This document shows positions 16,302-64,000 of a DNA stretch of 64,000 nucleotides, piece by piece. The notes under the pieces are model-generated. The model was given only the letters and a program-made list of their open reading frames with translations. It made no database searches and was not told the DNA's origin. Numbering within the stretch: position 1 is the stretch's first letter; the number at the start of each line of letters is the position of its first letter. Location of the stretch: the NCBI GenBank assembly GCA_026936335.1, contig JAPMXV010000022.1:169290-233289 (forward strand), given 5' to 3'. The DNA comes from Mantamonas sphyraenae STR306 (lineage: Eukaryota > Protista > CRuMs). Both the position numbers and the translations under genes were made by a program.

Positions 16302-18786
16302 TCACCACCCATCCAACCATCCACGCTCCCCAGGCTCCTCCGCCTGCAGTGCCCTCACCACCTGCTCCACCACCACCTCCTCCACATCGCACACTCCTGC
16401 GTCACGTGCCATCCTTGCCAGATCCCTCACCACAGCCCCCGTGCTCCACAGATCCGCCTGCTGCAACCCTGTCTTGTCCAGCACCATCCCGTTCTCTCCA
16501 AACACTTCCGGTGCCGTGTACTCCTCCGTCATCCGCAGCGACACACCCGCATCCTGCAATTCCACCCCAATGTTCTCCAGGTCCACCAGCCGTACTCCTC
16601 CTTCAAACCACACCATGTTCCCCGGTTTGATGTCCATGTGCCACTTTCCAGCTCCATGCAGTGCATCCACACACATCTTCACCTCCTCCATCACCCTGTG
16701 CAGCGTCACCCCTTCAGGCAGTCCATTCTCCAACACGTGACACAACGGCAGTGCCACAGCACCCACAGCCCTTCCACTCTTCACAACCACAGGGCACAGA
16801 CCCCACCGCTCCTTGCTCTCCATCAGTTCCTCGTTGGCCACAAACTCCGCGCTCTCTTTCATCATCACTTTCCAGAAAACCGGCCGTTCCTCAAATCTGC
16901 CTTGCCCTCGCGACAGCCCCAAGTCGCCATACAGCAACAGCGGGCCCGTCTCCACCCCCGCTTGACCCAGAACACGCGCACCTTCCCTCGACATCTCGTT
17001 GTATACAGCCGACATCTCCTCACTCCACCCGCTGTCCTGGCTGTCACCTCCACCCGAGCTTCCCTGGCTTCCCATGCTGCCTCCGCCCCCGCTCCCTCTC
17101 TTTGGTGGTGGTGGCAACAGTGAGCGGTCCTGAACGGTGTAAACACCTGACCGCGGGATCGTCCGACGCCCAGAGCCCACCAGCGAGCGTAGAGCTCGCA
17201 CACACTGTCTCCTCCTCTTGGTCTTGCTCTCCAGTGTCTCCAAAACGCCGTTCATGTGCTGGAAGAGCACCTCCTCGACCAGAAGCAACGCGCGTGCGTC
17301 TCGCGAGTCCTTGCTCACGTCCACTGCGTTTGTCATCCACAACGACTCTGCTCCTTGGCCGGGCTTGCCCAGTGTGTACCACATCACACCCACCACGACC
17401 TGGGGTCCCGAGAAACACCGCAGCAGCAATGGGATCTTTGGTGGCTCCTTCTCCTCATCCGTCCACTCAAGCATCGCCTGCACATACAGGATGCTTGTAA
17501 TCCCTTCCGCAAGCACCAAATCCATATGTTGATCACCACCGTGCTTCTTCTTGCCCTCCATCAACGCCACGGGGATGTTCACTCCATGGACATCCACGCC
17601 CGTTTCCTGGGCAGGCTTCGTTCCCTTGAACTCATACGTGGTCATCTCCCAGTCGCCATGCTTGCACCATATGCCTCCGCCACATCTCAGGTAGCTCTTC
17701 ATCCTGCAACAGTCAGACAGTGGGCGTCAGCATCGGCACAATCAACATTCCCTCAACTCTACCTGTACACTCCCCCACACCCCACCCCCTCCGCACCACT
17801 CACGTTGATGTTGTGGCCTGCGGAATGTACACACGTGCCACTTGGCCCGTGAGACAGTGAAACTCGCGCAGTGCTGTACACTCGTCCTGCTCGCGCACCG
17901 TTGGCATGCGAGTGTTCAGACTGAACACGGCATTGCTGGGGTTGACCTCAAGTGTTTCCAGTGCTTCAAGTGTTTTAAGTGCTTCCACTGCGTACTGCTC
18001 CTTCCCGATCATCCGCAAGTACAGCGTGCGCGTGTACGAGAGAGCAGAGAAACAGTACTGTTCTTGTTCACCGCCATCGTCGTCGCTGCTGCTGCTGCTG
18101 CCGCTGCCGTCCACACTTCCCTTGCCCTTGTCCACGTCGATCAGCATCTGCAACATCGATTCAACAGAGACATCGATGAGTGTGTCACCCTCCTCGATCC
18201 TGCCCTCCAACACCAGCTCGGCTGTTGTCTTCCAATCCTCCACAATGCGTTCAAAAGTGCCCTTCTTGTCCTTGGTAGGCATGTGGCGCAGACACAGCAG
18301 CTCCACCAGCTCTTTGCCAGTGACTGCCAGCCAAGGAGCATTGTGTCAGCCCCAATCCATGTTCCCCTCTCTCCAGTGTACACTTACCATCGTGTGCATC
18401 CCCTTCCTCGTTGTCTCCGTCCTGCGGTGGCGCTGTGGAAGAGCGCGCGCGTTTTGTGTGAGTCATCAGGAACGAATGTCAAGGACAATTCCTGATTACT
18501 CACATCTCCCGCCCCATCACTCACAGTACTGTTCCACGGCTTCGAACCACAACGATTCCGCTCCATCTGCGTACTCGATTGCAGCATAGGCCGCTACCTT
18601 CTCTGCCATGGCCTTGTGGAAGCTGTCCGAGTTTGCTTTCTCATCGTCCGACAATGTCGACAATGCTGCAAAGAACAATCCGCAGTCGGCTTCCGACAGC
18701 CTGCCCAGCACCCTCAGGGAATCATAGGATGACTGTGCTTCCATCAGCTCCTTGTAGACCAGGAATGCTTTGTCGTTGGTGGACAT
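16302..18786 (-). CDS. Header/REase-like/protein kinase gene, copy 2; exons 18786-18525, 18432-18388, 18323-17804, 17703-16302
   Basis: Three GT-AG introns join MSTNDKAFLVYK...EQY-SPPQDGD..HD-VTGKELVELL...ATTST-MKSYLRC in frame to the kinase ORF (HMDIKPGN, YTAPE). Confidence 0.85.
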
Positions 18787-19892: not shown

Positions 19893-21675
19893 TCACCACC
19901 CATCCAACCATCCACGCTCCCCAGGCTCCTCCGCCTGCAGTGCCCTCACCACCCGCTCCACCACCACCTCCTCCACATCGCACACTCCTGCGTCACGTGC
20001 CATCCTTGCCAGATCCCTCACCACAGCCCCCGTGCTCCACAGATCCGCCTGCTGCAACCCTGTCTTGTCCAGCACCATCCCGTTCTCTCCAAACACTTCC
20101 GGTGCCGTGTACTCCTCCGTCATCCGCAGCGACACACCCGCATCCTGCAATTCCACCCCAATGTTCTCCAGGTCCACCAGCCGTACTCCTCCTTCAAACC
20201 ACACCATGTTCCCCGGTTTGATGTCCATGTGCCACTTTCCAGCTCCATGCAGTGCATCCACACACATCTTCACCTCCTCCATCACCCTGTGCAGCGTCAC
20301 CCCTTCAGGCAGTCCATTCTCCAACACGTGACACAACGGCAGTGCCACAGCACCCACAGCCCTTCCACTCTTCACAACCACAGGGCACAGACCCCACCGC
20401 TCCTTGCTCTCCATCAGTTTCTCGTTGGCCACAAATTCCGCGCTCTCTTTCATCATCACTTTCCAGAAAACCGGCCGTTCCTCAAATCTGCCTTGCCCTC
20501 GCGACAGCCCCAAGTCGCCATACAGCAACAGCGGGCCCGTCTCCACCCCCGCTTGACCCAGAACACGCGCACCTTCCCTCGACATCTCGTTGTATACAGC
20601 CGACATCTCCTCACTCCACCCGCTGTCCTGGCTGTCACCTCCACCCGAGCTTCCCTGGCTTCCCATGCTGCCTCCGCCCCCGCTCCCTCTCTTTGGTGGT
20701 GGTGGCAACAGTGAGCGGTCCTGAACGGTGTAAACACCTGACCGCGGGATCGTCCGACGCCCAGAGCCCACCAGCGAGCGTAGAGCTCGCACACACTGTC
20801 TCCTCCTCTTGGTCTTGCTCTCCAGTGTCTCCAAAACGTCGTTCATGTGCTGGAAGAGCACCTCCTCGACCAGAAGCAACGCGCGTGCGTCTCGCGAGTC
20901 CTTGCTCACGTCCACTGCGTTTGTCATCCACAACGACTCTGCTCCTTGGCCGGGCTTGCCCAGTGTGTACCACATCACACCCACCACGACCTGGGGTCCC
21001 GAGAAACACCGCAGCAGCAATGGGATCTTTGGTGGCTCCTTCTCCTCATCCGTCCACTCAAGCATCGCCTGCACATACAGGATGCTTGTAATCCCTTCCG
21101 CAAGCACCAACTCCATATGTTGATCACCACCGTGCTTCTTCTTGCCCTCCATCAACGCCACGGGGATGTTCACTCCATGGACATCCACGCCCGTTTCCAT
21201 GTCCGGCTTGGTACCCTTGAACTCATACCTGGTGTCCTCCCCGTCGCCATGCTTGCACCATATGCCTCCGCCACATCTCAGGTAGCTCTGCATCCTGTAA
21301 CACCACTCGGACAGTGGGCGTCAGCATCGGCACAATCAACGTTCCCCACCACTCTACCTCTCCACCCCCCTCCGCACCACTCACGTTGATGTTGTGGCCT
21401 TTCGATTGTACACTCGTGCCACTTGGCCCGTGAGGCTGTGAAACTCGCACTGTGCTGTACACTCGTCCTGCTCGCGCACCGTTGGCATGCGAGTGTTCAG
21501 ACTGAACACGGCATTGCTGGGGTTGACCTCAAGTGTTTCCAGTGCTTCAAGTGTTTTAAGTGCTTCCACTGCGTACTGCTCATCACCGATCATCCGCAAG
21601 TACACTGTGCGCAAGTACGAGAGAGCAGAGACCTCGTACTGCGGCTGTTGCTCACCGTGTTCACCGCCATCGTCA

Positions 21676-46812: not shown

Positions 46813-49145
46813 ATGCGGCGTAGCAGTGTGTTGTATGCAAAAGTGGTGGTTGGGTTTGTGTTGGCGACGCTGTGTGTGAATCTGATGATTGTCGGGGTGA
46901 AGGAGCGGGAAACGAAAGGGCAGAACGAACTGGCACGAGAGAGGCTGGCGGAGGAGAGGATGAAGCGGGAAGAGGAGGCGGAGGAGAGGAGAAGGGTGAA
47001 AAGGGAGGAGGAAGAGGAGGAGCGGAGGCAGGAGGAAGCGAGGAGGAAAGAGGCGGCGGAGAGAGAGGAACAGCGGAAGTTTCGGGAGAGAAAGGAGCGA
47101 GAGGTGAAGGAACGGTTGGAGAAGGAGACAAGGGAGAGGGAAGAGAGGGAGAAGAGGGAGAGAGAGGAGAGGGAGAGGGTGGAGAGGGAGGAGAGGGAGG
47201 AAAGGGAGAGGAAGGAGCGAGAGACAGCGACACCGACACCTGAACCGACGCCTGTGCCGTGTCCAGGGTACAAGAGCACACTGTCGGTGGTGCATGGGTA
47301 CACGGAGGAACGGGAGACAAGTGCGGCCAAGTTGAGTGGGGTGGCCGGGTGGAAGGCGCTGGAGTGGGAGGCACAGGAGGAGTGTAGGTGGCGTGTCAAG
47401 GCTGTGGGCAATGTGGAGTTGTGGATGGAGGGGAACAGTGTGAATAGGACAAAGGAGATGCATGGGAAGGGCACGTTGGTGGAGGTGAACGGGGTTTTGG
47501 GGCGGGTGGAGCTGGCAAGGTGAGTGTGTGGGGGGGGGGGGAGAGGGGGGGAAGAGGGGAGGGGAGGGGGAGACGGGTGTGGCTGCTGACATGGTAGGGG
47601 GTTGGGGGTTGGGGGTTGGGGCAGTCGCGTGCCAACCGCAGCAGAGATTCGGACGGGCGACGACTTGACAGGGTACGTGCACGTGTGGGCAAACTGCACA
47701 TGCGCAGCGTATAGAGTGGTGACTGTGGTGACGAGGAGACCCATGGACGAGTGGCCGGCTCCACAGGAAAAGGAGCTGGGTGCAGGAGAGCGGAGGCTGT
47801 TGGAAATGCGAGGGTGGCGGACGGCGCCTGCGCTGCCGTTTGGGAGGCAGGACATGGGGTTTGCGGTGGTGGATGAGCAGGTTCTGTTTATTTTTGCCGG
47901 GTTTTGTGGTGGGAGGCACGAGGTGGGAGACTACGGTTGTGAGCCGCGGGGACACAGTCGGGCGAGCGAGGTGTTGAACGTGCGGTACCCACACTGGGGC
48001 TGGCGTGAGGTGCCCCCGTTTCCCGGTGCCATGAGGCAGTCTGCGTCGTGTGCTGCGTTGGGGAGGAGTGTGTATTGCATGGGAGGGTCCAGCGTAGGTT
48101 GGGGAACGGGGAGAAAGGGAGGGGGGAGGGGTGGTGGTGCAGTAGGATGCTGACACGTGTGCTGGGGCGTTTGAAGTACACTCCAATTGACCCGAGTGAG
48201 TTTGTGGGCAAGGCCCTGCCCAAGTACAAGGCGAATCCGTACGCATACAGCGATCTGTGGGAGCTGAAGCTGCCAGAGGCCCTGTTTGCAGACGTGAACG
48301 TGACGTTGCGTGTGGTGAACGAGAGCCACTGGGTGAGCAGCCATTGGGAGGAAGGATGGGTGCAGAGGAGCAATGCACCGGTGGATCTGAATGGAGCGGC
48401 GATGATAGGGCACAAGGGCAAGCTGCTACTGGTGGGAGGGTGCGACTACGACATGCTGACGTTTCATACGTGGTCGGATGCAAATGGGCACACATACCGG
48501 CTGGGGTCAAGGCTGTGGTTGTACGATCGGGAGCAGGATCGGTGGGCGCAGGGCCCAGAGTGTCCCGGGACGCCGCGGTTTGACCACACGTTGAGTGTCG
48601 TGGGAGAGTACATGTACGTGATGGCAGGGGTCACGACGACAAACAGCGTGCTGCAGGAGGGGGGCGACGCCGTGATTCGGGCCACGGTGGACAATTGGCG
48701 GTACCATGTGGAGGAGGAGCGGTGGGAGCGGGTGGCAGATCACCCAACGTGCAATCGGCTGGGGCGAGGGATCCAGAACGTGGTGTATGGGAGGTATATG
48801 GTGTTCCTGGGAGGTGCGCCACGGCCGGTGATCTTTCCAGACGGGCGCAGCAAGGAGATGTACGGACGGGTGCAGACGCAGGAGTCGGGGGATTGGAGGG
48901 GCTACCACTTTTCGAACGAGGTGAGTTGGTATGACACGGAGTTGGATGTGTGGGGAAAGTGCACGGTGAGGCTGCCGTTTGACAGTGTGAACTTGGTGCC
49001 GATGGTGGTGGGGAAGTCGGTTTATATGTTGGGAGGGGAGAATGTGCCGTCGTGTTGGAATGGATTGGGGATCGGGGTGCATTCGCACGAGGTGGTGGTG
49101 GCGGATGTGGAGATTGCACGAGTGGTGGTGAGCGAGGAGGGATAG
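46813..49145 (+). CDS. Type II membrane-anchored Kelch-repeat protein with E/R-rich stalk; introns 47520..47597 and 48094..48176
   Basis: N-terminal TM segment (VVVGFVLATLCVNLMIVGV) and charged single-helix stalk. Kelch motifs: LFIFAG, VYCMGG, LLLVGG, YD...DRW, MYVMAG, VYMLGG. Confidence 0.8.
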
Positions 49146-49352
49146 GGAAGGACCATGCAGTGGGGTGGAGAGGGGAGGGGTGGAGAGGGGAGGGGAGTGG
49201 AGGGTGGAGGGTTCTCGCACACATACAAGCACGCAGTGGGTGACCATTGTGGGGGATTGGTTCTTTGTCCATGTTGGGTTGGGGTGACGCGGTGGGAACC
49301 AAACCTACATCAAAAAAAAAAAACGCAAGGAAAGAAAACCACTCCACACAGC

Positions 49353-50873
49353 ATGTCTCAGAGTGAGAAAGAGGACAACACACTGCACAGTATCGAAAAA
49401 CTGCATCCAATGCACGCATGGTCTTCTGTAGAGCTTTCAGAATGGGTGTTGGAGCGAACGGACAGTCAGGATGCAGCATCCGCTGTTCAGGAGACGGGCC
49501 GAACGGGCTACGAGTTCCTCATGGAGATGAACACCAGCATGCGTTGCGAGTTGTTGCGTTTGTCCGAAAAGGATGTCATCGCGCTGGAGCGAGACATTGC
49601 ACTGGAGACATTGCAATTCCAGGAGCAATCCGAGCCGGACCGAGTTCTTCGTCTGATGAAGTTCATGAATGGGAGCCACGTCCCGGACAAAGACGCAGGC
49701 CACATCGAGATGGAGATGGTACCCGAGGTTCAGCAGGTGATCACGGCACTCAAACACGCATGGGATGAGAAAGACGACGTCGTGATCATGGACGTGTCGA
49801 ATCCGAAGCGGCTCGAACTTCGAAATCGCAATGCTCGCAGCTACTTCGCTTCAGTGGACGTTCAACCCACGGACATCGATGAGCTGCGCAAGTTTGCCAA
49901 CACCAGTGCATTCGGCCGAGGTGATGACACAGTGATCGACAAGGAGGTCCGCAACGGACTGGAAATCCCCTCGTCCCGATTTTGGAGCAACCCCTCATGT
50001 CCCATCTCGTCATACGACACGTGCACCTTCCGCAAACTGCTGCTGTACGAGGAGGGGGGCAAGTTTGATGCACACCGAGATTCAATGACGGATGCGGGCC
50101 ACGTACGCACGGTGGTGTGGATTCTGCAAACCGATTTTGAAGGTGGTGATCTGGTGGTGGAGGCCCGGGATGGAACGCAACACCGAGCCGGTGCTGGCCA
50201 GGTCATCATGTTTTGGACGGACATGCTGCACTGGGTCGAGGAGGTGACCAGTGGCAACCGCGTCTCCTTGCAGTACGACGTGATCACGGGTCGTGACCGC
50301 GAAGCCTACGAGATGTTTTCAAGATACGGCTCCTCCCGTGATGAGAAAAGAGACCACAAAGCAAAGGAGTTTGTGGAGCGAAATCGCAAACCGATGGAGG
50401 AGGACCAGATGGATGAAGTGTGCGATCGAATCTTGGACGAGACCAACGACGCGTTGATGCTGCTGCTCCAGGCATCGCCACACCATGCGATTGGCTTGCC
50501 ATTGTGCCATGCGTACAGCATTGCAGGGGTGCGCAAGGGCATTCTGCGTGGCATGGACGAACTGCTGGTGCACTTCATGCGCCGATTTGCAGATCGAAAC
50601 GACCTGATGCGCACGTCTGTGTTCCCAGCTCTTGCTTTCCGGTACCACGACGGGAGGGAGGGAGAGGATTTCAATTGCTTCCTGGAGGTGGAGTTCTCCA
50701 ACGGGTACCTTTGGTCGTCTGGCAAAGAGTGCACTCTGTTTCCGCACCAGCTGTGCACGATGACGGACATCCTTCGCGTCGGCGACGGAGACACTGGCAA
50801 CGAGGCATTCCCCTCCGAGTACTCGTACTTGTTGGGAGTGTGTGCTGTGTTTGGCGAGAAGGAACGCGATTGA
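49353..50873 (+). CDS. SAM-like N-terminus plus 2OG-Fe(II) dioxygenase
   Basis: WSSVELSEWV...TGYEFL is SAM-like. Then SAFGRG.DTVID.EVR, KLLLYEEGGKFDAHRD (HxD), FEGGDL and LHWVEEVTSGNRVSLQY (distal H and RxS). Confidence 0.85.
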   Translation: MSQSEKEDNTLHSIEKLHPMHAWSSVELSEWVLERTDSQDAASAVQETGRTGYEFLMEMNTSMRCELLRLSEKDVIALERDIALETLQFQEQSEPDRVLRLMKFMNGSHVPDKDAGHIEMEMVPEVQQVITALKHAWDEKDDVVIMDVSNPKRLELRNRNARSYFASVDVQPTDIDELRKFANTSAFGRGDDTVIDKEVRNGLEIPSSRFWSNPSCPISSYDTCTFRKLLLYEEGGKFDAHRDSMTDAGHVRTVVWILQTDFEGGDLVVEARDGTQHRAGAGQVIMFWTDMLHWVEEVTSGNRVSLQYDVITGRDREAYEMFSRYGSSRDEKRDHKAKEFVERNRKPMEEDQMDEVCDRILDETNDALMLLLQASPHHAIGLPLCHAYSIAGVRKGILRGMDELLVHFMRRFADRNDLMRTSVFPALAFRYHDGREGEDFNCFLEVEFSNGYLWSSGKECTLFPHQLCTMTDILRVGDGDTGNEAFPSEYSYLLGVCAVFGEKERD

Positions 50874-50937
50874 TGAAGAAGGGACAGAGAGGGGAAAGAG
50901 ACTGAATGCACATCCCTCTCTCATTTGCAATCTTCCA

Positions 50938-52464
50938 ATGGAACCCTGCTCCACCGAGCGCCACAGCGCGTTTGGCAAGACGGAGGACCATCAGCTGGTG
51001 GAGGTGGCGACGAACTTTGTGCGCAAGAGCAAGCCCGACGGTGACCCGAGCGACATCAAGGACGTGACGTCGTTTGCACCGAGCAAGGAGGAGCTGCTTG
51101 GCTACCGCGCTCTGTCGGACGTGGACACGTCGTTGCTGCAGGAGCGCCTTGTGGTGCTGCAGCAGATCAACGGCTCGATGAACGTGTTCCTGCCGCTTGT
51201 GGACCTGACGCAGATCGACACGCGCTTCAGCCTGGCAAACAACTTTTCGTGTGCGCGCGGCCTTGTGTTTACGGCACCGAAGTTGCAGCTGTGGCAGCAG
51301 GGTATGGACGGCACGTACTGCAGCGACTATCGCCCGGACATCACGATCAACCGCCAGAAGACGGTGGATCTGTGGGATCAGGAGCCGAGCGAGGAGACGC
51401 TGAATGGCAGTGTGTTTGGCCAGATTGCGGCAGCTCTCAAGACGCACGTGAAGAACCTGCGCCAGAGGCCGAGCAGCCAGGCGTGGCACGTGGACTTTAC
51501 CGGCGAGTCGTCGATCGACGCTGGCGGACCGTACCGTGAGACGTTCTCGCAGATGATCCGCGAGATCCAGTCGCCGCACATCGACCTGCTTGTGCATGTG
51601 GGCAACTTTAAGAGCGACAACGGTATGCACCGTGACACGTTTGTGCCGAAACCGAGCGGCAAGGGCCAGGTGTACAAGGACCACTACCAGTTCCTGGGCA
51701 AGCTGATGGGCGTGGGTCTGCGCCAGAACATGACGCCTGTGTTCTGGAAGAAGCTGGTGCAGTTCCCGGTGACGCGTGCGGATCCGGTGGCCATGGACAC
51801 GATGTGCGTGCAGTGCAAAGACGCCATCATGGACATTGACAAGAAGGGCGTGACGTCGGAGATGTTTGGCGACGTGATTGACGAGACGTTCACGACGCAT
51901 CTGACGGACGGCGCGGAGGTGGAGCTTGTGGAGGGTGGCAAGCACAAGAAGGTGACGTTTGAGAACCGCCACGAGTACGTGCGCCTTGTGGAGCAGGCTC
52001 GTCTGAACGAGTTTGACACGCAGGTGGGCTGGATCCGCGAGGGTCTGACGGGCATGGTGCCGGTGCGCCTGTTTTCGCTGTTTACGTAGCAGGACATCCA
52101 GCTGCGCATGTGCGGTGTTGCCGACGTGCCGGTGGAGCTGCTGAAGAAGCACACGTACTACAGCGGGTACACGAAGGACAGCGAGACGGTGAAGATGTTC
52201 TGGGATCGCATGGAGAACTACATGCCGGAGGAGAGGCAGCTGTTCCTGCGCTTTGTGTGGGGCCGATCGCGTCTGCCGTTGGGCGAGGACGCGAGGTACA
52301 CGTTTACGCTGAGCACGGCGTACCGCAACACCGAGACTGCTCTGCCCGAGTCACACACGTGCTCGTTCCAGCTGGATCTGCCGAGCTCGTACGGCACCAC
52401 CGAGGTGATGTCGCAGCGTCTGGCGTACGCGTTCTACAACTGCGCGGATGTGGACAACGACTAA
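50938..52464 (+). pseudogene. HECT E3 ligase C-terminal fragment (HERC-like) with an in-frame TAG at 52087-52089
   Basis: FTGESSIDAGGPYRE, FLGKLMG, VTFENR.EYV, FLRFVWGRSRLP and LPESHTC. The two ORFs share a frame and are split by LFT*QDIQ. Confidence 0.75.
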
Positions 52465-52707: not shown

Positions 52708-55700
52708 TCATTCGAGGCGTTGGCGTTTGGAGGAGGAGGAGGAGGAGGAGGAGGAGGAGGAGGAGGAGGAGGAGGAGGAGGAGGAAGGGTCTTTGCGCTT
52801 GGGGAGGGTGAAGGAGGGGATCGGGTAGGCGTCGACGAGTGCTACCGTGGTAGGGCGGGTGGTGATGTGGGGTGTGATGCGGTCGATGAGGGTGTGGAGG
52901 AGGGTGTGCAGTGTGGCGTCGCTGGGTTGGGGGTTATCGAGCCAGGCGATCTTGAGGGAGAGGGAGGTGACGCCGCGGGTGAGATTGTCGCTGATGGCAG
53001 GGGATAATTGCTGGTAGGTGAGACGTGGCCTGAGGAGGCGGACAAAGAAGGCCAGGTCGACAGGCGGCACGCCAACGTTGCCCAGCGCCAGGATGATGTG
53101 TCGCACCAGGGACATCTTGCTGCCGTTGTTGATCAGCACGCGCAGTGCCTGGTGCTCGTGTGTGTGCTGATGGCGAGGGTGCTTGGCTGCGCGTGCCTTC
53201 ATGTGTGCCAGCAGCGTCTGGAACTCCCGCGCCGTGCAGCTACCGCGCTCGTCGCTGGTAGATCCACTGTTCCAGCCACTGCGCACAGAGTCAGGGTGCC
53301 ACTTGTCCACCTTGGTGGTGGTGAGGTGGTGGTCGTAGTCGCATTGTGTCCAATGTGGGTCGCTGTCGTTGTCAGCAGGGCGTCGTGCTTTCTGCAGCCA
53401 CAGCTGGGTCTGCTTGTGCTCCTTCCAAGTGGTGGGATGGGGTCTGTTGCCAAGAGTGTCCATCTCTGTCATGAGCAGGTGGAGGAGGGCGTAGTTGGGG
53501 TCGCCATGGTCGTGTGGCTCCTCCAGCCAGAACACCTTCAACCCAGCCTTTGTTACACCCATGGCCAGACCAGCGTGGATGATGGCATCGCTGCACGCCT
53601 TTTGATCCATATCACGGCCCAGAAGGATGAGACAGAAGGCCATGTCGCCCTGGGAGAGGGGAATGTTGCCCAGAGCGAGCTGAATCTGTCGAATCAGCGT
53701 GCGCAGGGTGCCATGGCAAACCACGACACGCGCCTGCAGGGTCATAAGGTCTGGGATGTCGTCGATGAAATGCTCGTTGGCCAGAGCGTGCATGTGGCTC
53801 AGCATTGCCGTGTGCTCCTTCTTGTTGCTGTGGCTGCGCTCGCTCCTGCGCCACTTTGTCCAGCCACTGCGCACAACGCCATCTGGCAGTCCATCCTCCA
53901 CGGCCATCTTCTCCTCCTCCTCTGTGGGCTCGGGGAGAACAAGCTCGGTGATGGCAAGGGCGTTGACGGCGTCGACTGTGGTAGGGCGGGTGTTGATGTG
54001 GGGTGTGATGCGGTCGATGAGGATGTGGAGGAGGGTGTGCAGGGTGGCGTCGCTGGGTTTGGGGTTGTCGAGCCAGGCGATCTTGAGGGAGAGGGAGGTG
54101 ACGCCGCGGGTGAGGGTGTTGCTGATGGCGTTGGAAACCTGTTGGTAGTTGAGGTTTGGCCTGAGGAGGCGGACAAAGAAGGCCAGGTCGACAGGCGGCA
54201 CGCCAACGTCGCCCAGCGCCAGGATGATGTGTCGCACCAGGGACAGCAGGTTGCCGTTGTTGATCAGCTCACGCAGTGCCTGGTGCTCGTGTGTGTGGAT
54301 ATGGCGAGGGTGCTTGGCTGCGCGTGCCTTCATGTGTGCCAGCAGCGTCTGGAACTCCCGCGCCGTGCAGCTGCCACGTTCGTCGCTGGGAGAGTGCGAT
54401 GCCCAGCCACTGCGCACAGTCTCAGGGTGCCACTTTTCCACCTCGGTGGTGTTGAGGTGGTGGTCGTAGTCATATTGTGTCCAGTATGGGTCGCTGTCGT
54501 TGTCAGCAGGGCGTCGTGCTTCCTGCAGCCTCAGCTGGGTCTGCTTGTGCTCCTTCCAGGTGGTGGGATGGACTCTGCTGCCGAGAGTGTCCATCTCTGT
54601 CATGAGGAGGTGGAGGAGGGCGTAGTTGGGGTCGCCGTGGTCGTGTGGCTCCTCCAGCCAGCACACCTTCAACCCAGCCTTTGTCACACCAATGGCCAGA
54701 CCAGCGTCGCGGATGACACTGCTGCACGCCTGTTGATCCATTGCACGGCCGAGGAGGGTGAGACAGAGGGCCATGTCGCCCTGGGAAAGGGGAATGTTGC
54801 CCAGAGCGAGCAGAATCTGTCGGACAAGCGTGGTCGTAGTGCCATGGCAGACCATAACACGCGCCTGCAGGGTCATGAGGTCGGGGATGTTGTCGATGGG
54901 ATGCTCGTTGGCCAGGGTGTGCATGTGGTTCAGCAGTGCCGTGTGCTCCTTCTTGTTTCTGTGGCTGCGCTCGTCACTGTACCCCCATGTCCACCCTTTG
55001 CGCACAACGCCATCTGGCAACTTGTTCTTCTTGTTGACGCCTGGTTTCTTCCTTGCACCGTTGTTTCCGTTCTTGGCCCTCCTTGCCCGTGTGCTCGACG
55101 TTCCTGTCTCGGTGCCACTGCCAGCCGTGACCCTGTGCCCGTGCTTTCCATTCCATGTGCTGCTTTGTGTCCCAGAGCGACATCCGCTGCGGCCCCTCTG
55201 TCGTGTGCGGCGACTGATTCGTTTGGGCAGCGACTGTTCATCCATGTTCTCCTGCTCCATGTCGTCTGTGTCGTCATCGCTATTGTCCCCAGGTACGGAA
55301 TCCCCATCTATGGTGGTTGTTGAGGTTGTGGTCGTGGCTGTGTGGTCTTGCGAGACGGGCTGAGCCCAGGCCTCGTCGCTCGCCTCGACATACCGGAGCA
55401 CGTCATCCTGAGTCATCCAATCGGTGTCGTGGAAGCGGTAGAAGCGCCTTGCGGGTTGTGTGGTGTCCACATAAAGCGTTCCAGGCTCGTGTTCGGAGGA
55501 ATGGCTAGATACGTTGCTGGGCGCAGCAGGCGGAGGCGGCGGGGGAGGAGTGGTGTTGGATGTGTGAAGGCGGTTCGGATAGTGTAACAGAACAGGAACC
55601 CACACAAAGGACTGCATGGAGTTCTGTGGATATGCGTAGCCGGGTGGGGAAAGATATTGCTGAGGAATGTAGCCTCGTTGCAGGTTCATTGGACCGAAAC

Positions 55701-55875
55701 TGAGTGGAACACGATAGGTGATAGGTTGGGGTGGGCGTGTAATGATGCATGTGCGTGAAGGTTGGAGGATGGTCAGCATAGCGTGGACGGTTGGGCGCAA
55801 AGAGGGACCTTTGAAGGCGGATGGAGCGACAAGTGTGTGCAAAGGACGGTTGACGGAACCGGAGATGCGAAACAT
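52708..55875 (-). CDS. Subtelomeric modular repeat protein, copy 1 (A-B-A-B modules; putative wHTH DNA-binding protein)
   Basis: 1055-aa ORF with an internal 1131-nt (377-aa) repeat, a Pro/Gln-rich and acidic N-terminus, and a KRK-polySer-KRQR tail. The start codon is uncertain. Confidence 0.8.
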   Translation of the reverse strand: MFRISGSVNRPLHTLVAPSAFKGPSLRPTVHAMLTILQPSRTCIITRPPQPITYRVPLSFGPMNLQRGYIPQQYLSPPGYAYPQNSMQSFVWVPVLLHYPNRLHTSNTTPPPPPPPAAPSNVSSHSSEHEPGTLYVDTTQPARRFYRFHDTDWMTQDDVLRYVEASDEAWAQPVSQDHTATTTTSTTTIDGDSVPGDNSDDDTDDMEQENMDEQSLPKRISRRTRQRGRSGCRSGTQSSTWNGKHGHRVTAGSGTETGTSSTRARRAKNGNNGARKKPGVNKKNKLPDGVVRKGWTWGYSDERSHRNKKEHTALLNHMHTLANEHPIDNIPDLMTLQARVMVCHGTTTTLVRQILLALGNIPLSQGDMALCLTLLGRAMDQQACSSVIRDAGLAIGVTKAGLKVCWLEEPHDHGDPNYALLHLLMTEMDTLGSRVHPTTWKEHKQTQLRLQEARRPADNDSDPYWTQYDYDHHLNTTEVEKWHPETVRSGWASHSPSDERGSCTAREFQTLLAHMKARAAKHPRHIHTHEHQALRELINNGNLLSLVRHIILALGDVGVPPVDLAFFVRLLRPNLNYQQVSNAISNTLTRGVTSLSLKIAWLDNPKPSDATLHTLLHILIDRITPHINTRPTTVDAVNALAITELVLPEPTEEEEKMAVEDGLPDGVVRSGWTKWRRSERSHSNKKEHTAMLSHMHALANEHFIDDIPDLMTLQARVVVCHGTLRTLIRQIQLALGNIPLSQGDMAFCLILLGRDMDQKACSDAIIHAGLAMGVTKAGLKVFWLEEPHDHGDPNYALLHLLMTEMDTLGNRPHPTTWKEHKQTQLWLQKARRPADNDSDPHWTQCDYDHHLTTTKVDKWHPDSVRSGWNSGSTSDERGSCTAREFQTLLAHMKARAAKHPRHQHTHEHQALRVLINNGSKMSLVRHIILALGNVGVPPVDLAFFVRLLRPRLTYQQLSPAISDNLTRGVTSLSLKIAWLDNPQPSDATLHTLLHTLIDRITPHITTRPTTVALVDAYPIPSFTLPKRKDPSSSSSSSSSSSSSSSSSSSKRQRLE

Positions 55876-56039
55876 GGGAGGTTACTTACACGGGGTAGGG
55901 ATGGTATGAGCGGAAGGGGGAACTGGTGTTGCTGTGAATGGTGAGAAGTTGTTGTTGGAAACGTTGGTTGGGCAGGTGAGGGTGAGTGGAATTTCGCACA
56001 CGCCACTGAGGACAAAGGTGCGTGTGATAGGGGTGAGTG

Positions 56040-59000
56040 TTACTCCAGGCGTTGGCGTTTGGAGGAAGAGGGGGAGGAGGAGGAGGAGGAGGAAGAGGAA
56101 GGGTCTTTGCGCTTGGGGAGGGTGAAGGAGGGGATGGGGTAGGCGTTGACCAGTGCGACTGTGGTAGGGCGTGTGGTGATGTGGGGTGTGATGCGGTCGA
56201 TGAGGGTGTGGAGGAGGGTGTGCAGTGTGGCGTCGGTGGGTTTGTCGAGCCAGGCGATCTTGAGGGAGAGAGAGGTAACACCACGATTGAGGGTGTTGCT
56301 GATGGCGTTGGAAACCTGCTGGTAGGTGAGGCGTGGCCTGAGGAGGCGTACAAAGACGGCCAGGTCGACAGGCGGCACGCCAACATTGCCCAGCGCAAGG
56401 ATGGTGTGTCGCACCAGGGACAGCTTGCTGCCGTTGCGGATCAGCTCATGCAGTGCATGGTGCTCGTGTGCATGCTGATGGCGTGGGTACTTGGCTGCGC
56501 GTGCCTTCATGTGTGCCAGCAGCGTCTGGAACTCCCGCGCCGTGCAGCTGCCACGCTCGTCGGTCGCGTCACCCCGGGACTTGCTCCAGCCACTGCGCAC
56601 AGACTCTGGTTCCCACTTTTCCACCGTGGTGGTGGCAAGGTGATGGTCGTAGTCGCATTGAGTCCAGTGTGGGTCGCTGTCGTTGTCAGCAGGGCGTCGT
56701 GCTTTCTGCAGCGACAGCTGGGTCTGCTCGTGCTGCTTCCAGGTGGTGGGATGGGGCCTGTCGCCGAGACGGTCCATCTCTGTCATGAGCAGGTGGAGGA
56801 GGGCGTAGTTGGGGTCGCCGTGGTCGTGTGGCTCCTCCAGCCAGCACACCTTCAACCCAGCCTTTGTCACACCCATGGCCAGACCAGCGTTGAGAATGGC
56901 AACGCTGCACGCATGTTGATCCATGTCACGGCCGAGAAGGGTGAGGCAGAAGGCCATGTCGCCCTGGGAGAGGGGAATGTTGCCCAGAGCGAGCTGAATC
57001 TGTCGGACGAGTGTGGTCACGGTGCCATGGCAGACCACAACACGCGCCTGCAGGTTCATGTGGTCGGAGATGTCGTCGATGGGATGCTCGTTGACCAGGG
57101 TGTGCATGTGGTTCAGCAGTGCCGTGTGCTCCTTCTTGTTGCTGTGCATGCGCTCGCTCTTGCGCCAGAATGTCCAGCCACTGCGCACAACTCCATCTGG
57201 CGGTCCATCCTCCTCGGCCATCATCTCCTCCCCTGTGGGCTCAGGGAGAATAATCTCGGGGATGTCGAGGGTGATCACGGCATCGATGGTGGTGGGGCGG
57301 GTGGAGATGTGGGGTGTGATGCGGTCGATGAGGGTGTGGAGGAGGGTGTGCAGTGTGGCGTCGCTGGGTTTGGGGTTGTCGAGCCAGGCGATCTTGAGGG
57401 AGAGGGAGGTGACAACGCGGCTGAGGGTGGAACTGATGGCGCTTTTCACCTGCTTGTAGGTGATGTGTGGCCTCAGGAGGCGGACAAAGAAGGCCAAGTC
57501 GACAGGGGGCATGCCAACGTTGCCCAGCGCCAGGATGATGTGTCGCAGCAGGGAGAGCAGGTCGCCGTTGTTGATCAGCTCACGCAGTGCCTGGTGCTCG
57601 TGTGTGTGCTGATGGCGAGGGTGCTTGGCTGCGCGTGCCTTCATGTGTGCCAGCAGGGTCTGGAACTCCCGCGCCGTGCAGCTGCCACGTTCGTCGTTGG
57701 TAGTGTGCGATGCCCAGCCACTTCGCGCAGGCTCGGGATGCCACTTGTCCAACTCGGTAGTGGTGAGATGGTGGTCGTAGTCGCATTGTGTCCAGTGTGG
57801 GTCGCTGTCGTTGTCAGCAGGGCGTCGTGCTTTCTGCAGCCACAGCTGGGTCTCCTTGTGCTCCTTCCAGGTGGTGGGATAGGTCCTGCTGCCGAGACTG
57901 TCCATCTCTGTCATGAGAAGGTGGAGGAGGGCGTAGTTGGGGTCGCCATGGTTGTGTGGCTCCTCCAACCAACACACCTTCAACCCAGACTTTGTCACAC
58001 CCGTGGCCAGACCAGCGTTGAGGATGGTTACACCGCACACACGTTGATCCATGTCACGGCCGAGAAGGGTGAGGCAGAAGGCCATGTCGCCCTGGGAGAG
58101 GGGAATGTTGCCCAGAGAGAGCTGAATCTGTCGGACCAGCGTCAACAGGGTGCCATGGCAGACCACAACACGCGCCTGCAGGGTCATGAGGTCGGGGACG
58201 TTGTCTATGGGATACTCGCTGGCCAGAGTGTGCATGTGTTTCAGCAGTACCGTGTGTTCCTTCTTGTTTCTGTGGCTGCGCTCGTCACTGCGCCAGTTCC
58301 GCGACCATCCTTTGCGCACAACGCCATCTGGCAACTTCACGCCTGCTTTCTTCCGTGCGCCGGTGTCTCCGTTCTTGGCCCTCCTTGCCCGTGAGCTCGA
58401 CGTTCCTGTCTCTGTGCCACTGCCAGCCGTGACCCTGCGCCAGCCCTGTCCGCTGCCTTTCATCTTTTGTGGACCGGTGCGTCGGCTGGTGTGGCACCTG
58501 CATCGTCGCGTGTGGCCTCCTCTTGTGCGTCTCGGCTGCCATTCGTCCGCGTCCTCTTGTTCAATGTCGTCTGTGTCGTCGTCGCTGTCACCTTGCGGCA
58601 TGTACTCCTCATCCATGGCATCATCAGTGTACGCAAAGCTGAGTGTGCCCTGAGTTTCCACCTCGTCGTCCACGTGCTGCTGGGTTGCGTCGTTTGCCTC
58701 GCCGTCTTCTTCGTACGCCTCCATCCCTGAGCTGGTCATCCACTCTGAGTTGCTGGAGGTTGACCGTGGTTCACGGTGGCCAAAGTTCAGGAACATCAGG
58801 TCTTCCACGTCGCTGGTGTCATGTGTGTGTGTGTCCTGGTCTGCGTCGTCGTCGTCGCTGTCTCCAGTCCGCCGTGTGGCCTGGTGGGAGGAGGACGACG
58901 ATGTGGTGGTGGATGTGGTCCGTGTGATATCGACAAAGGCAGGACTGACACGTTTGGGAACGCGGTTGTGGTTTGTGGCGGGTTGAGCGGACGGAGGGTG

Positions 59001-59228
59001 GAACGGAGCCTGAGCGAAGTGCATCTGGGCGGTTTGTCGCGGCTGAGGAGGCGGCGGAGGAGGGTAGGCGTAGTATGGGTGGCCCTGATGAGCATATGCG
59101 TGGTGCTGCTGAGAGTAGGTGTTGACAGGGACCCAGATGATGGGTGGTTGTGGATGCTGGTACGGGTTTTGTACGCCAGAAACGGGCAGCATGTTCGGAA
59201 ACGGCTGGGCAGCCATGGGAGGGACCAT
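56040..59228 (-). CDS. Subtelomeric modular repeat protein, copy 2
   Basis: 1062-aa intact ORF with the same A-B-A-B architecture and C-terminal tail. Confidence 0.85.
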   Translation of the reverse strand: MVPPMAAQPFPNMLPVSGVQNPYQHPQPPIIWVPVNTYSQQHHAYAHQGHPYYAYPPPPPPQPRQTAQMHFAQAPFHPPSAQPATNHNRVPKRVSPAFVDITRTTSTTTSSSSSHQATRRTGDSDDDDADQDTHTHDTSDVEDLMFLNFGHREPRSTSSNSEWMTSSGMEAYEEDGEANDATQQHVDDEVETQGTLSFAYTDDAMDEEYMPQGDSDDDTDDIEQEDADEWQPRRTRGGHTRRCRCHTSRRTGPQKMKGSGQGWRRVTAGSGTETGTSSSRARRAKNGDTGARKKAGVKLPDGVVRKGWSRNWRSDERSHRNKKEHTVLLKHMHTLASEYPIDNVPDLMTLQARVVVCHGTLLTLVRQIQLSLGNIPLSQGDMAFCLTLLGRDMDQRVCGVTILNAGLATGVTKSGLKVCWLEEPHNHGDPNYALLHLLMTEMDSLGSRTYPTTWKEHKETQLWLQKARRPADNDSDPHWTQCDYDHHLTTTELDKWHPEPARSGWASHTTNDERGSCTAREFQTLLAHMKARAAKHPRHQHTHEHQALRELINNGDLLSLLRHIILALGNVGMPPVDLAFFVRLLRPHITYKQVKSAISSTLSRVVTSLSLKIAWLDNPKPSDATLHTLLHTLIDRITPHISTRPTTIDAVITLDIPEIILPEPTGEEMMAEEDGPPDGVVRSGWTFWRKSERMHSNKKEHTALLNHMHTLVNEHPIDDISDHMNLQARVVVCHGTVTTLVRQIQLALGNIPLSQGDMAFCLTLLGRDMDQHACSVAILNAGLAMGVTKAGLKVCWLEEPHDHGDPNYALLHLLMTEMDRLGDRPHPTTWKQHEQTQLSLQKARRPADNDSDPHWTQCDYDHHLATTTVEKWEPESVRSGWSKSRGDATDERGSCTAREFQTLLAHMKARAAKYPRHQHAHEHHALHELIRNGSKLSLVRHTILALGNVGVPPVDLAVFVRLLRPRLTYQQVSNAISNTLNRGVTSLSLKIAWLDKPTDATLHTLLHTLIDRITPHITTRPTTVALVNAYPIPSFTLPKRKDPSSSSSSSSSPSSSKRQRLE

Positions 59229-59918
59229 GTACGCGTAGCTGTGGGGAGACGGGCAGGGGCATGGTGGGGTAGGAACGGTGAGCGGAAGACGGCATGGACG
59301 CCGTTAGAGCAGAAGCGGGACGAAGGGAGGCTGGAACGAGCAGAGAGGGGAAACGGAGGAGATTGGCAGACCGGGAAACTGGCAACGGGGAGGGCAGTGA
59401 CAGGGAGAGGGGTTCGGAGAAGAGCGGAGGTGGCAGCGGCGGTGGTGATGGGGAAGTGGAGATGCGGGGGAGGAGTGCAGGAGCGACAGAGGCATGGAGG
59501 AGGCATGGAAGCGGGAGCAGCGGGCAGCCAGAAAACGGAGTGGAAGGCAGAACGCACGCTGGGTAGGTGTTGGATGTGTGTTGTTGCTTCGGATTGCTTA
59601 AGTGGTCCTTGTCCATGATGGTGGTGATGGTGCTGGAGTGTATGTGGATTGTGTTGGACTAGTGGAGGGTGTTGTGGGTGTTGGCGATACTGTGGTTGAA
59701 TGATGGGTGGGGTGCACAGGGGGACGAGGCTAAAGAGACGGGGTTGGTGATGAATGGGGAAGAGGGGGAGGCGATGTTTGGGTGTGGTGGGATGGAGGCG
59801 TATGTGGAGAAGGGAGGGTCGGAAGGGTGGGTGACACTCCCGGATGAGGTGATGGAGAGTGTGGTGGAGTGGATGGGGAGGTGAATGAGTGAGGAGGGTG
59901 TGAGAATGAAAGGGTGGT

Positions 59919-62900
59919 TCATTCGAGGCGATGGCGTTTGGAGGAGGAGGAGGAGGAGGAGGAGGAAAGGTCTTTGCGCTTGGGGAGGGTGAAGGAGGGG
60001 ATGGGGTAGGCGTTGACGAGTGCGACGGTGGTGGGTCGGGTGGTGATGTGGGGTGTGATGCAGTCGATGAGGGTGTGGAGGAGGGTGTGCAGTGTGGCGT
60101 CGCTGGGTTTGGGTTTGTCGAGCCAGGTGATCTTGAGGGAGAGGGAGGTGACGCCGCGGGTGAGGGTGGCGCTGATGGCACCTTGAACCTGCTGGTAGGT
60201 GAGACGTGGTCTGAGGAGACGGACAAAGAAGGCCAAGTCGACAGGCGGCACGCCAACGTTGCCCAACGCCAGGATGATGTGTCGGACCAGGGACTTCAGG
60301 CTGCCGTTGTTGATCAGCTCACGCAGTTCCTGGAGCTCGTGTGCGTGCTGATGGCGAGGGTGCTTGGCTGCGCGTGCCTTCATGTGTGCCAGCAGCGTCT
60401 GGAACTCCCGTGCCGTGCAGCTGCCTCGTTCGTCGTTGTGCAGGTGTGTGCTCCAGCTATTGCGCACTGACTCAGGGTGCCACTTGTCCACCTTGGTTGT
60501 GGTGAGATGGTTGTCGTAGTCGCATTGTGTCCAGTGCGGGTCGCTTTCGTTGTCAGCAGGGCGTCGTGCTTCCTGCAGCCACAGCTGGGTCTGTTTGTGC
60601 TCCTTCCAGGTGGTGGGATGGGGTCTGTCGCCGAAAGTGTCCATCTCGGTCATGAGCAGGTTGAGGAGAGCGTAGTTGGGGTCGCCGTGGTCGTGTGGCT
60701 CCTCCAGCCAGCATACCTTCAACCCGGCCTTTGTCACACCCATGGCCAGACCAGCCTTGGTGATGGCAACGATGCACGCATGTCGATCCATGTCTCGGCC
60801 GAGAAGGGTGAGGCAGAATGCCATGTCTCCCTGGGAGAGGGAAATGTTGCCCAGAGCGAGCTGAATCTGTCGGACAAGCGTGTTCAGGGTGCCATGGCAG
60901 ACCACAACACGCGCCTGCAGGGTCATGAGATCTGGGATGTCGTCGATGGGATGCTCATTGGCCAGGGTGTGCATGTGGTTCAGGAGTGCCACGTGCTCCT
61001 TCTTGTTGCTGTGGGTGCGCTCGCTCTTGCGCCAGGACGTCCAGCCACTGCGCACAACGCCATCTGGCAGTCCATCCTCCACGGCCATCTTCTCCTCCTC
61101 TGTGGGCTCGGGCAGAACGAGCTCGGTGATATCGATGGCGTTGACGGCGTCGGTGGTGGTGTGGGTCTGGTGGTGATGTGCGGTGTGATGCGGTCGATGA
61201 GGGTGTGGAGGAGGGTGTGCAGTGTGGCGTCGCTGGGTTTGGGGTTGTCGAGCCAGGCGATCTTGAGGGAGAGGGAGGTGACACCGCGGGTGAGGTTGAG
61301 GCTGATGGCCTGTTGAACCTTCTTGTAGGTAAGTTGTGGCCTGAGGAGGCGGACAAAGAAGGCCAGGTCGACAGGCGGCACGCCAACGTTGCCCAGCGCC
61401 AGGATGATGTGTCGCACCAGAGACATCAGGTTGCCGTTGTTGATCAGCTCACGCAGTGCCTGGTGCTCGTGTGTGTGCTGATGGCGAGGGTGCTTGGCTG
61501 CGCGTGCCTTCATGTGTGCCATGAGCGTCTGGAACTCCCGCGCCGTGCAGCTGCCACGCTCGTCGGTTGTTCTATGTGCTGCCCAACCATTGCGCATAGA
61601 CTCTGGTTCCCACTGTTCCACCTTGGTGGTGGTGAGGTGGTGGTGGTCGTAATCGCATTGTGTCCAGTGTGGGTCGCTGTCGTTGTCAGCAGGGCGTCGT
61701 GCTCCCTGCAGCCACAGTTGGGTCTGCTTGTGCTCCTTCCAGGTGGTGGCATGGGTTCTGTCGCCGAGAGTGTCCATCTCTGTCATGAGTAGGTGGAGGA
61801 GGGCGTAGTTGGGGTCGCCGTGGTCGTGTGGCTCCTCCAGCCAGCACACCTTCAACCCAGCCTTTGTCACACCCATGGCCAGACCAGCGTTCTTGATGGC
61901 ATCACTGCACGCCTGTTGATCCACGTCATGGCCCAGAAGGATGAGACAGAAGGCCATGTCGCCCTGGGAGAGGGGAATGTTGTACAGAGCGAGCAGGATC
62001 TGTCGGACCAGCATGGTCAAGGTGCCATGGCAGACCACAACGCGCGCCTGCAGGGACATGAGGTCGAGGATGTTGTCGATGGGATGCTCGTTGGCCAGGG
62101 TGTGCATGTGGTTCAGGAGTGCCACGTGCTCCTTCTTGTTGCTGCGGCTGCGCTCGTCGCTGATTCCCGCTGTCCACCCTTTGCGCACAACACCATCTGG
62201 CAACTTGTTCGTCTTGTCCACGCCTGCTTTCTTCCGTGCGTCGGTGTCTCCGTTCCTGGCCCTCCTTGCCCGTGTGCTCGATGTTCCTGTCTCTGTGCCA
62301 CTTCCAGCCGTGACTTTTCGCCTGCGCTGTCCGCTGCCTTTCATCGTTTGTGGACCAGTACGTCGGCTGGCGTTGCCTCTGCGTCGTCTATGGCCTCTAC
62401 GTGTGCGTCTCGGCTGCCAATCGTCCGTGTCCTCCTGCTCTATGTCGTCTGTTTCGTCGTCGCTGTCGTCTTGCGGCATGTACTCCTCATCCATGGCATC
62501 GCCAGTGTCTGCGAAGCTGAATGAACCCCCAGTTTCCAACTCGTCGACCACGGGCTGCTGGGTTGCGTCGTTTGCCAAATCGTCTTCTTCGTACGCCTCT
62601 ATCCATGAGGCGGTTATCCACTCTGAGTTGCTGGAGGGCGACCGTGGTTCAAGGTGGCCAAAGTTCAGGAACATCAGGTCCTCCACGTCGCCGGTGTCAT
62701 GTGTGTGCATGTCCTGGTCTGCGTCGTTGTCGTCGCTGTCTCCAGTCTGCCGTGTGGTCTGGAGGGAGGAGAACGACGATGTGGTGGTGGATGTGGTCTG
62801 TGTGATGCCGACAAAGGCAGGGCTGACGCGTTTGGGGACGCGGGTTGTGGTTTGTGGTGGGTTGAGCAGGCGGAGGGTGCGACGGAGGCTGAGCGAAGTG

Positions 62901-63107
62901 CACCTGGGCAGTTTGTCGCGGCTGCGGAGGCGGCGGAGGAGGGTAGGCGTAGTATGGATGGCCCTGATGAGCATATGCGTGGTTTTGCTGCGGGTAGGTG
63001 TTGACAGGCACCCAGATGATGGGTGGTTGTGGGTGCTGGTACGGGTTTTGTACGCCAGAGACGGGCAGCATGTTCGGAAATGGCTGGGCAGCCATGGGAG
63101 CGACCAT
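59919..63107 (-). pseudogene. Subtelomeric modular repeat protein, copy 3, with two frameshifts (~62843 and ~61160)
   Basis: Collinear with copy 2 but split across ORFs 62697-63107, 60980-63730 and 59919-61088. There is an extra G at ~62843 and an extra 2 nt at ~61160. These could be sequencing errors. Confidence 0.7.
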
Positions 63108-63780
63108 GTACGCGTAGCTGTGGGGAGACGGGGAGGGGACGGGCGGGGTGGAAACGGTGAGCGGAAGGCGGAATGGACGCTGTCAGGGCAGAAGCGGGGG
63201 TGAAGGGAGGCTGGAACGAGCAAAGAGGGAAAACGGAGGAGATTGGCAGACCGGGAAACTGGCAACGGAGAGGGGAGTGACAGGGGAGAGGGGATCGGAG
63301 AACAGCGGAGAAGGCAGCAGCGGTGGTGATGGGAAAGTGGAGATGCAGGGGAGGAGTGCAGGGAAGCGACGGAGGCATGGAGGAGGCATTGAAGCGGGAG
63401 AAGCGGGCAGTCTGAAAACGGAGTGAAATGCAGAACGCACGCTGGGTAGGTGTTGGATGTGTGTTGTTGCTTCGGAGTGCTTGAGTAGTCTTTGTCCATG
63501 ATGGTGGTGGTGGTGCTGGAGTGTATGTGGATTGTGTTGGACAGGTGGAGGGAGTTGTGGGTGTTGGTGATAATTTGGTTGAAGGCGGAAGGGCAGTGCT
63601 GACTGCGTGGCGTTGCAGGACGACGGCAACTCACCAGCAACATTTTCACTCCCACCCATTGCCCACCGCCCCATGTCACCACACAACTCAGCCACCCCGC
63701 CACCAGACACAAGCACAACTCACACAACATAGACCGGACTCATCATATATAACAGAACATCATCCCATTTGGGGTTAGAA

Positions 63781-64000
63781 TTAGGGTTAGGGTTAGGGTT
63801 AGGGTTAGGGTTAGGGTTAGGGTTAGGGTTAGGGTTAGGGTTAGGGTTAGGGTTAGGGTTAGGGTTAGGGTTAGGGTTAGGGTTAGGGTTAGGATTAGGG
63901 TTAGGGTAGGGTTAGGGTTAGGGTTAGGGTTAGGGTTAGGTTAGGTTAGGGTTAGGGTTAGGGGTAGGGTTAGGGTTAGGGTTAGGGTTACGGGGTTAGG
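63781..64000 (+). repeat. Telomeric repeat (TTAGGG)n, right chromosome end
   Basis: Tandem TTAGGG runs to the window end with the G-rich strand pointing outward. A few variant units are present. Confidence 0.98.

Follow-up and report, generated by a model that had tools for sequence, protein, structure and literature searches.

Telomere-adjacent genes of Mantamonas sphyraenae encode a putative diversifying DNA-binding array of predicted winged-helix modules

A stretch of 64,000 nucleotides at the right end of contig JAPMXV010000022.1 (C22:169290-233289, the window) of the marine flagellate Mantamonas sphyraenae STR306, a deep-branching species, was analysed. The assembly comprises 25,061,354 bp in 78 contigs. 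Next to the telomere, three tandem genes on the minus strand each encode four modules in the order A-B-A-B (12 modules in total). These genes belong to an array family that is real, expressed and apparently undescribed. On balance, the family is best read as a putative diversifying, sequence-specific DNA-binding array, which would work like the zinc fingers of PRDM9 and of the KRAB proteins on another fold.

All 12 modules, and every patch sequence quoted in a preliminary description of this DNA, were found in the window. The module size given there (about 185 aa) was replaced by about 197 aa for A and about 179 aa for B. Sequence statistics were calculated on 60 A and 62 B modules from the window and 29 other loci (about 30 loci in all), which had been picked by similarity to gene 1. 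A and B proved to be homologous, as proposed (HHalign 99.1%, 35% identity over 132 columns). Column entropy bore out a near-invariant scaffold with substitutions gathered in three patches: scaffold columns were mostly below 0.5 bit and patch columns reached 2-3.7 bits. The variable columns are 6-13 (patch 1, N-terminal arm), 58-60 (patch 2, start of helix 1) and 94, 97, 98, 101 and 102 (patch 3, helix 3). Each module has about 13-15 variable residues in the three patches. The patch combination was unique in 56 of the 60 A and 57 of the 62 B modules. Patch 1 of A had been described as hypervariable. One or two positions are freely so; the rest is mostly dimorphic by position in the gene, with KGWTx-GxSDER in the first A and SGWTx-WRKSER in the inner A (fixation index Fst 0.58). 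Columns outside patch 1 of A do not differ with module position (Fst 0.03 or less), and patch 1 of B has length variants. A glutamate and three histidines (E21, H28, H36, H131), carried by helices outside the winged-helix core, are conserved in A and B, and a metal site at these residues is possible.

Relatives were searched for in several collections. No family match for the modules was obtained in Pfam (the database searches were run without the joined spliced protein), and no match in the PDB sequences. A 5.8-billion-sequence set queried with the AB unit and the module profile returned no relative, and 1.84 billion representatives queried with the A+B profile without length limit returned no homologue. 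The ESM Atlas gave no relative by features and, by shape, a template modelling (TM) score of at most 0.41. JGI metagenomes and IMG/VR were also without a relative, and literature searches found no description of such an array family. The earlier impression that no described family could be recognized is in line with these blank searches.

Elevated nonsynonymous to synonymous rates (dN/dS) at the patches had been expected and were confirmed, and diversifying selection is seen there. Scaffold dN/dS was 0.40 (A) and 0.33 (B), and the scaffold is under purifying selection. Patch dN was 0.66, against a scaffold dS of 0.18 (A) and 0.15 (B), i.e. 3.6 and 4.5 times higher. Within the patches dN/dS was 1.3-1.4, synonymous diversity inside patch codons being also raised. 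Neutral diversity was 0.10 in the intron and 0.13-0.15 at fourfold sites. At the top sites, diversity at codon positions 1-2 was 0.5-0.75, with 0.12-0.19 at position 3 of A98, A102 and B102. Codon 98 is near saturation at positions 1-2 (0.68-0.75), position 3 being at 0.19 (A) and 0.34 (B).

An alternative source of this variation would be relaxed constraint, or local hypermutation like that of diversity-generating retroelements (DGRs), in a neutrally homogenized subtelomeric repeat. Codon sets of the NNT/NNC type at several sites do resemble DGR output, and the raised synonymous diversity of the patch codons would fit as well. Neutrality and DGR activity were rejected because relaxed constraint cannot exceed the neutral level, which patch diversity surpasses 4-5 times, and because the top sites show no preference for adenine (0.25-0.33 at codon 98). 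The interleaved buried codons of the same helix stay conserved, and no stop codon occurs in the 122 modules. No reverse transcriptase (RT) lies in the unit; a genome-wide RT search was not made. This explanation is largely refuted and was retained as very improbable.

Linkage between sites decayed from an r2 of 0.14-0.17 to about 0.03 (background) within about 30-60 nt, so the patches are reshuffled between copies, as had been supposed when subtelomeric recombination was put forward as the diversifying process. Four gametes were observed at about 70-77% of distant site pairs and the patches were almost uncorrelated. Modules of the same gene were hardly closer to one another than to modules of other genes. 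The pattern fits short-tract gene conversion across all ends, together with exchange of whole ends (C22 right and C70 left ends).

Structures were predicted with AlphaFold2 (AF2). The model of an A-B pair had a mean predicted local distance difference test score (pLDDT) of 51.8 and a predicted TM score (pTM) of 0.40. The model of B had a pLDDT of 63.3, a pTM of 0.61 and seven helices. In the A-B model, which is of low confidence, module A has helices at 58-68, 76-85 and 92-101, a short strand at 74-75 and strands at 105-108 and 114-117, i.e. the topology helix 1-strand 1-helix 2-helix 3-hairpin. It was compared with 48,161 chains using VIA-align, and the top 50 matches were winged-helix-type domains on residues 54-122 (Z 7.2-9.3). 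The best match was the Hop2 winged-helix domain (Z 9.3, root mean square deviation 1.9 Å, 60 residues), followed by Zur/Fur (Z 8.8-8.3) and by BlaI/MecI, MarR and Z-alpha (about 8). The Hop2, Fur and MarR matches are tied and name no single family. Neighbours of the B model were mostly winged-helix proteins on residues 54-120, with weak Z scores up to 5.7. The three-helix core of B was modelled, and its wing region (pLDDT <50) is homologous to the wing of A. Three extra helices per module lie beyond the core. From these models the modules very probably have a winged-helix fold; this fold, first proposed from sequence, is supported for residues 54-122 or so of A and, in B, for the three-helix core. 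The cores were placed in gene 1 as follows.

54655..54840, minus strand: winged-helix core (predicted) of the first A module of gene 1, from AF2 secondary structure and VIA-align; patch 2 at the helix 1 start (54840-54829), patch 3 on the recognition helix (54735-54706), wing hairpin at 54690-54655.
54070..54252, minus strand: helix-turn-helix core (predicted) of the first B module of gene 1, from the AF2 model; patch 2 at 54252-54241, helix 3 with patch 3 at 54144-54115, putative and poorly modelled wing at 54105-54070.

Entropy along helix 3 had a period of 96 degrees and the interleaved hydrophobic columns were conserved; therefore, on the predicted helix, the variable residues would form its exposed face, in agreement with the preliminary description. 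These residues are basic or amide/hydroxyl in 66% (A) and 75% (B) of cases and aromatic in 1-2%. Such a composition, rich in basic, amide and hydroxyl groups and poor in aromatics, resembles that of base-reading helices.

On the favoured reading as a DNA-binding array, the proteins would be nuclear and would read DNA sequence by tandem A-B pairs of winged-helix modules. From general knowledge of this fold, helix 3 would enter the major groove; contacts with the adjacent backbone or minor groove would come from the start of helix 1 and from the N-terminal arm. An A-B pair may act as a pseudo-dimer on one site, and each gene would have its own target. The basic tail would serve as a nuclear localization signal (NLS) and the low-complexity, P/Q-rich and acidic N-terminus would recruit chromatin or transcription partners. 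The subtelomere would be the diversity generator.

Several points weigh against this reading. Both models are of low confidence (mean pLDDT 51.8 and 63.3), the wing is formed in A only, and the N-terminal arm that carries patch 1 is unmodelled (pLDDT <50), so that this patch has no position in three dimensions. Foldseek searches of PDB and BFVD gave no match at E under 0.001, and a pdb_via comparison brought no further result. With so small a domain, a Z of 8-9 is evidence of fold but not of function; among winged-helix domains, many have protein, RNA or Z-DNA as their ligand. The patch sites were chosen for their variability and their dN is inflated by this choice. The selection estimates were made without a tree-based site model because of recombination. 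Neither an effector domain nor a target was identified.

The same signature of selection and shuffling would be expected of a repertoire of intracellular receptors, in which the winged-helix surface binds variable proteins (viral, symbiont, self/non-self) or RNA. The hypervariable repeats of fungal NLR/HET proteins are a comparable case. Structural neighbours of the modules include the protein- or RNA-binding cullin WHB, SelB and Roquin ROQ domains, and patch 1 has Trp/Tyr and length variants. However, the variable residues occupy the canonical recognition helix and include few aromatics, a basic stretch precedes A and the tail is NLS-like, and no signalling or NTPase domain was found with Pfam. 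A receptor function was judged unlikely. A secreted antigen was rejected, no signal-peptide-like start being seen by inspection. A telomere-repeat-binding protein was also rejected, as incompatible with hypervariable specificity.

The gene models are given below (A and B followed by module positions).

63772..64000, plus strand: telomeric repeat (GGGTTA)n, right end of C22 (Tandem Repeats Finder, 38 copies).
63500..63771, minus strand: telomere-abutting promoter/5' leader, common to nearly all chromosome ends (132 candidates; 26-mer motif).
63441..63499, minus strand: gene 3 exon 1, 59 nt, start MDKDYSS (same exon in gene 2 and 20 retrieved loci).
63118..63440, minus strand: gene 3 intron, 323 nt, GT..AG (joint 63117/63441, run X4 only).
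59919..63117, minus strand: gene 3 exon 2 (sequence; intact twin L005); P/Q-rich and acidic N-terminus, A(62191) B(61597) A(61058) B(60467), poly-Ser, basic tail.
59558..59616, minus strand: gene 2 exon 1 (conserved exon).
59239..59557, minus strand: gene 2 intron, 319 nt (homologous to the validated gene 3 intron).
56040..59238, minus strand: gene 2 exon 2, open; N-terminus, A(58322) B(57728) A(57191) B(56600), tail.
52708..55875, minus strand: gene 1, open, 1055 aa; A(55008) B(54417) A(53877) B(53286), tail.
52711..52803, minus strand: C-terminal basic-Ser-basic tail of gene 1 (KRK...KRQRLE), NLS-like (sequence; NLS role presumed).
56043-56117 and 59922-59984, minus strand: same NLS-like tail in the other two genes.

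Genes 2 and 3 had been thought to start at 59228 and 63107. Their true starts are at 59616 and 63499, where a 59-nt exon 1 is followed by an intron. In gene 2, the inner copy, the distal 190 nt or so of the leader are missing, and the similarity of the units stops at 63583/59700. Genes 1 and 2 are open. Gene 3, previously taken as a single open frame, is broken in the assembly near 62842 (+1 nt) and near 61159 (+2 nt), as defined against its twin at the C70 left end (L005), which is open and shares 99.7% identity with it. Four sequencing runs were compared over 61100-63750 of the window. The 62842 deletion was present in contigs of three or more runs and the 61159 deletion in two runs. The frame breaks are probably consensus errors because the run contigs show both deletions; alternatively, gene 3 may be a freshly broken copy. 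Gene 1 has an alternative type of N-terminus, which is also found on the innermost copies of C70, C61, C19, C1 and C46. The WVPV motif is common to both types and the N-terminal reading frame is preserved; DLMFLNFG is a further conserved N-terminal motif. The true start of gene 1 is uncertain, ATG 55689 being possibly the one used. Upstream (55700-55891, minus strand), there is a GTAAGT near 55889, and just before this ATG a pyrimidine tract runs up to a CAG at 55700; an intron in this interval, with the true start of the alternative N-terminus at the ATG, is probable.

Both the 59-nt exon 1 and a GT..AG intron of 319-330 nt are conserved among genes 2 and 3 and 20 of the retrieved loci. The exons were joined computationally for the frame check. 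Run X4, alone of the four, has the joint 63117/63441, which skips exactly the predicted 323 nt. Its depth was about 270 in the intron versus about 10,000 in the exons, with no cover beyond 63592. The sequencing study includes three DNA runs and one RNA run of M. sphyraenae, and X4, whose label 'DNA?' was a guess, is evidently the RNA run. The array family is expressed in culture and spliced, since X4 skips exactly the intron that had been predicted beforehand. The many variant contigs of X4, which give no levels, suggest that many paralogues are transcribed in culture. In a run from another study (X5, a 2024 biofilm metagenome), 29 contigs mostly 90-95% alike were present over 61100-63750; the family therefore exists in an independent population, the sequences indicating a wild relative of the STR306 strain as the likely source.

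The published FALCON assembly of M. sphyraenae has 78 contigs with a mean of 321,299.41 bp and 59.19% GC; 59 contigs have two telomeres and 14 have one, which makes 132 ends (PMC10492846). Repeats were masked ahead of gene prediction in that paper, and the array family may therefore be unannotated. Genome-wide motif searches returned 162 splice-donor motifs (at least 162 genes), 330 A and 336 B module motifs (about 660 modules) and 115 hits of the telomere-proximal 26-mer leader motif; reversed-pattern controls all gave 0. The telomere-junction sequence gave 132 first-look candidates, of which 40 were scored. Copies adjoin at least 115 of the 132 or so telomeres. The preliminary description had called for a survey of other chromosome ends, and the family was found at nearly all of them: one to three genes per end, read inward from the telomere-abutting promoter. 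In the listed copies the reading direction is away from the telomere, and some 1.75 kb separate the contig end from the first A module. Two A-B pairs per gene are usual, some genes having a single pair and others three or more; each B is paired with one A, which comes first. Artefact or chance was rejected as an explanation.

Over the distal gene, the right end of C22 (59850-63771) and the left end of C70 (L005, L002) share 99.7% identity, and they also have the first A-B of gene 1 in common, up to a break inside B. From sequence, this likeness would reflect either a recent end exchange or an assembly duplicate.

The fixed telomere distance, single orientation, near-universal occupancy and tandem inward copies would also suit a selfish telomere-linked element of the Y', TLH or HeT-A kind, spread between ends by recombination, whose protein recognizes or silences competing copies. 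Such an element is improbable: no RT, transposase, helicase or nuclease was found with Pfam, a spliceosomal intron is retained, no poly(A) remnant was seen at the unit ends, and interstitial copies are almost none. An autonomous transposon was rejected, no such domain being present and the intron being retained and spliced. The main exception to telomeric placement is C29. At about 75.6-103 kb of this contig, modules lie inside long frames (1902, 2172 and 3224 aa) fused to an unrelated region, of which C69 carries a paralogue (44%) in a frame of 2165 aa; the loci noted are L021:3640-4128 (minus strand), this part of C29 and C69:264403-264879. A Pfam and homologue search with the fused region gave no match. 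The region contains RNRHAF followed by a long helix, which we take to recall the HEPN RNxxAH spacing. An effector fusion and a misassembly are both possible.

A PRDM9-like or drive-related meiotic factor, whose specificity turns over as the genomic sites that it targets (hotspots, or sites of pairing or segregation) erode, was also weighed. Homogenized repeats with positive selection on DNA-contacting residues are the PRDM9 pattern (PMC6116924), and the genome is diploid with about 66 chromosomes (PMC10492846). This is nevertheless quite unlikely. More than 160 loci exist, not one; they are transcribed in ordinary culture; no SET, KRAB or SSXRD domain was found with Pfam; whole-end exchange (C22 right/C70 left, 99.7%) speaks against chromosome-specific codes; and Hop2, the top structural match, is tied with Fur and MarR domains.

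Under the preferred reading as a diversifying DNA-binding array, the selective driver is tentatively sought, by analogy with KRAB zinc-finger proteins, in an arms race with mobile or viral DNA. A further and more doubtful extension is a programmable winged-helix scaffold with a readable helix-3 code, forming an adaptive repertoire at every telomere and a protein-based defence against invading DNA. Telomeric recombination would make new specificities and telomere position effects may select the expressed ones. If this is true, zinc fingers and TALEs would be joined by a third natural scaffold for programmable DNA binding, and a unicellular eukaryote would have a protein-based adaptive defence against invading DNA. 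To our knowledge, C2H2 zinc fingers and TALEs supply most of the known cases of modular DNA-reading arrays that diversify. A winged-helix array of independent origin in CRuMs, near the base of Amorphea, would show that the solution evolved again. The 660 or so natural variants on a fixed scaffold would be a library from which a winged-helix recognition code could be derived, and might serve as an engineering platform. It would be unusual for the most distal gene at nearly all ends to be a diversifying nuclear factor and not a surface antigen.

Other genes were noted in the window. Three near-identical, divergent kinase-like genes (Pkinase E 3e-8) lie at 204-1619 (plus strand), 16302-17702 (minus strand) and 19893-21293 (minus strand); their N-terminal region is without known family. 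At the inner subtelomere edge, Pfam identified a kelch-repeat gene (48048-49145, plus strand) and a 2-oxoglutarate (2OG)-Fe(II) oxygenase gene (49155-50873, plus strand). A HECT ubiquitin-ligase domain extends over two open reading frames (50842-52464, plus strand) with an in-frame stop at about 52089, convergent with gene 1.

The array was finally compared with known systems. With the PRDM9 zinc-finger array it shares tandem modules homogenized by gene conversion and positive selection on the recognition helix (PMC6116924). The PRDM9/KRAB zinc-finger mode of evolution, a concerted scaffold with positive selection at recognition residues, was found here. The modules, however, are predicted winged-helix domains of 180-200 aa in A-B pairs, not 28-aa C2H2 fingers, and they occur at more than 160 loci at telomeres without PR/SET, KRAB or SSXRD domains; Pfam gave no match for C2H2 zinc fingers, PR/SET or KRAB domains in the family. 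KRAB zinc-finger clusters are likewise a large lineage-specific family with tandem duplication, adaptive sequence-reading residues and a separate N-terminal region; here the fold is another, the KRAB domain is missing and patches are exchanged across all chromosome ends. TALEs also combine a near-invariant scaffold with few variable residues per repeat, but their repeats are 34-aa helical hairpins reading one base each in secreted effectors, whereas 2-6 large modules (179-197 aa) and no 33-35-aa repeat-variable diresidue (RVD) repeats are present here. The winged-helix domains of Fur, MarR, BlaI/MecI, Z-alpha and Hop2 are alike in predicted topology (Z 7-9 over 57-70 residues); they differ in sequence (4-21% identity, no sequence match), and the modules form tandem arrays with a hypervariable helix 3. 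The Candida albicans TLO family, a telomere-associated expansion of nuclear transcription regulators (PMC4335505, PMC5908203), is by analogy the nearest positional parallel. It encodes Med2 in 10-15 copies, without a DNA-binding array. Human D4Z4/DUX4 offers another likeness as a telomere-associated nuclear regulator, the homeodomains of DUX4 not being known to be hypervariable.

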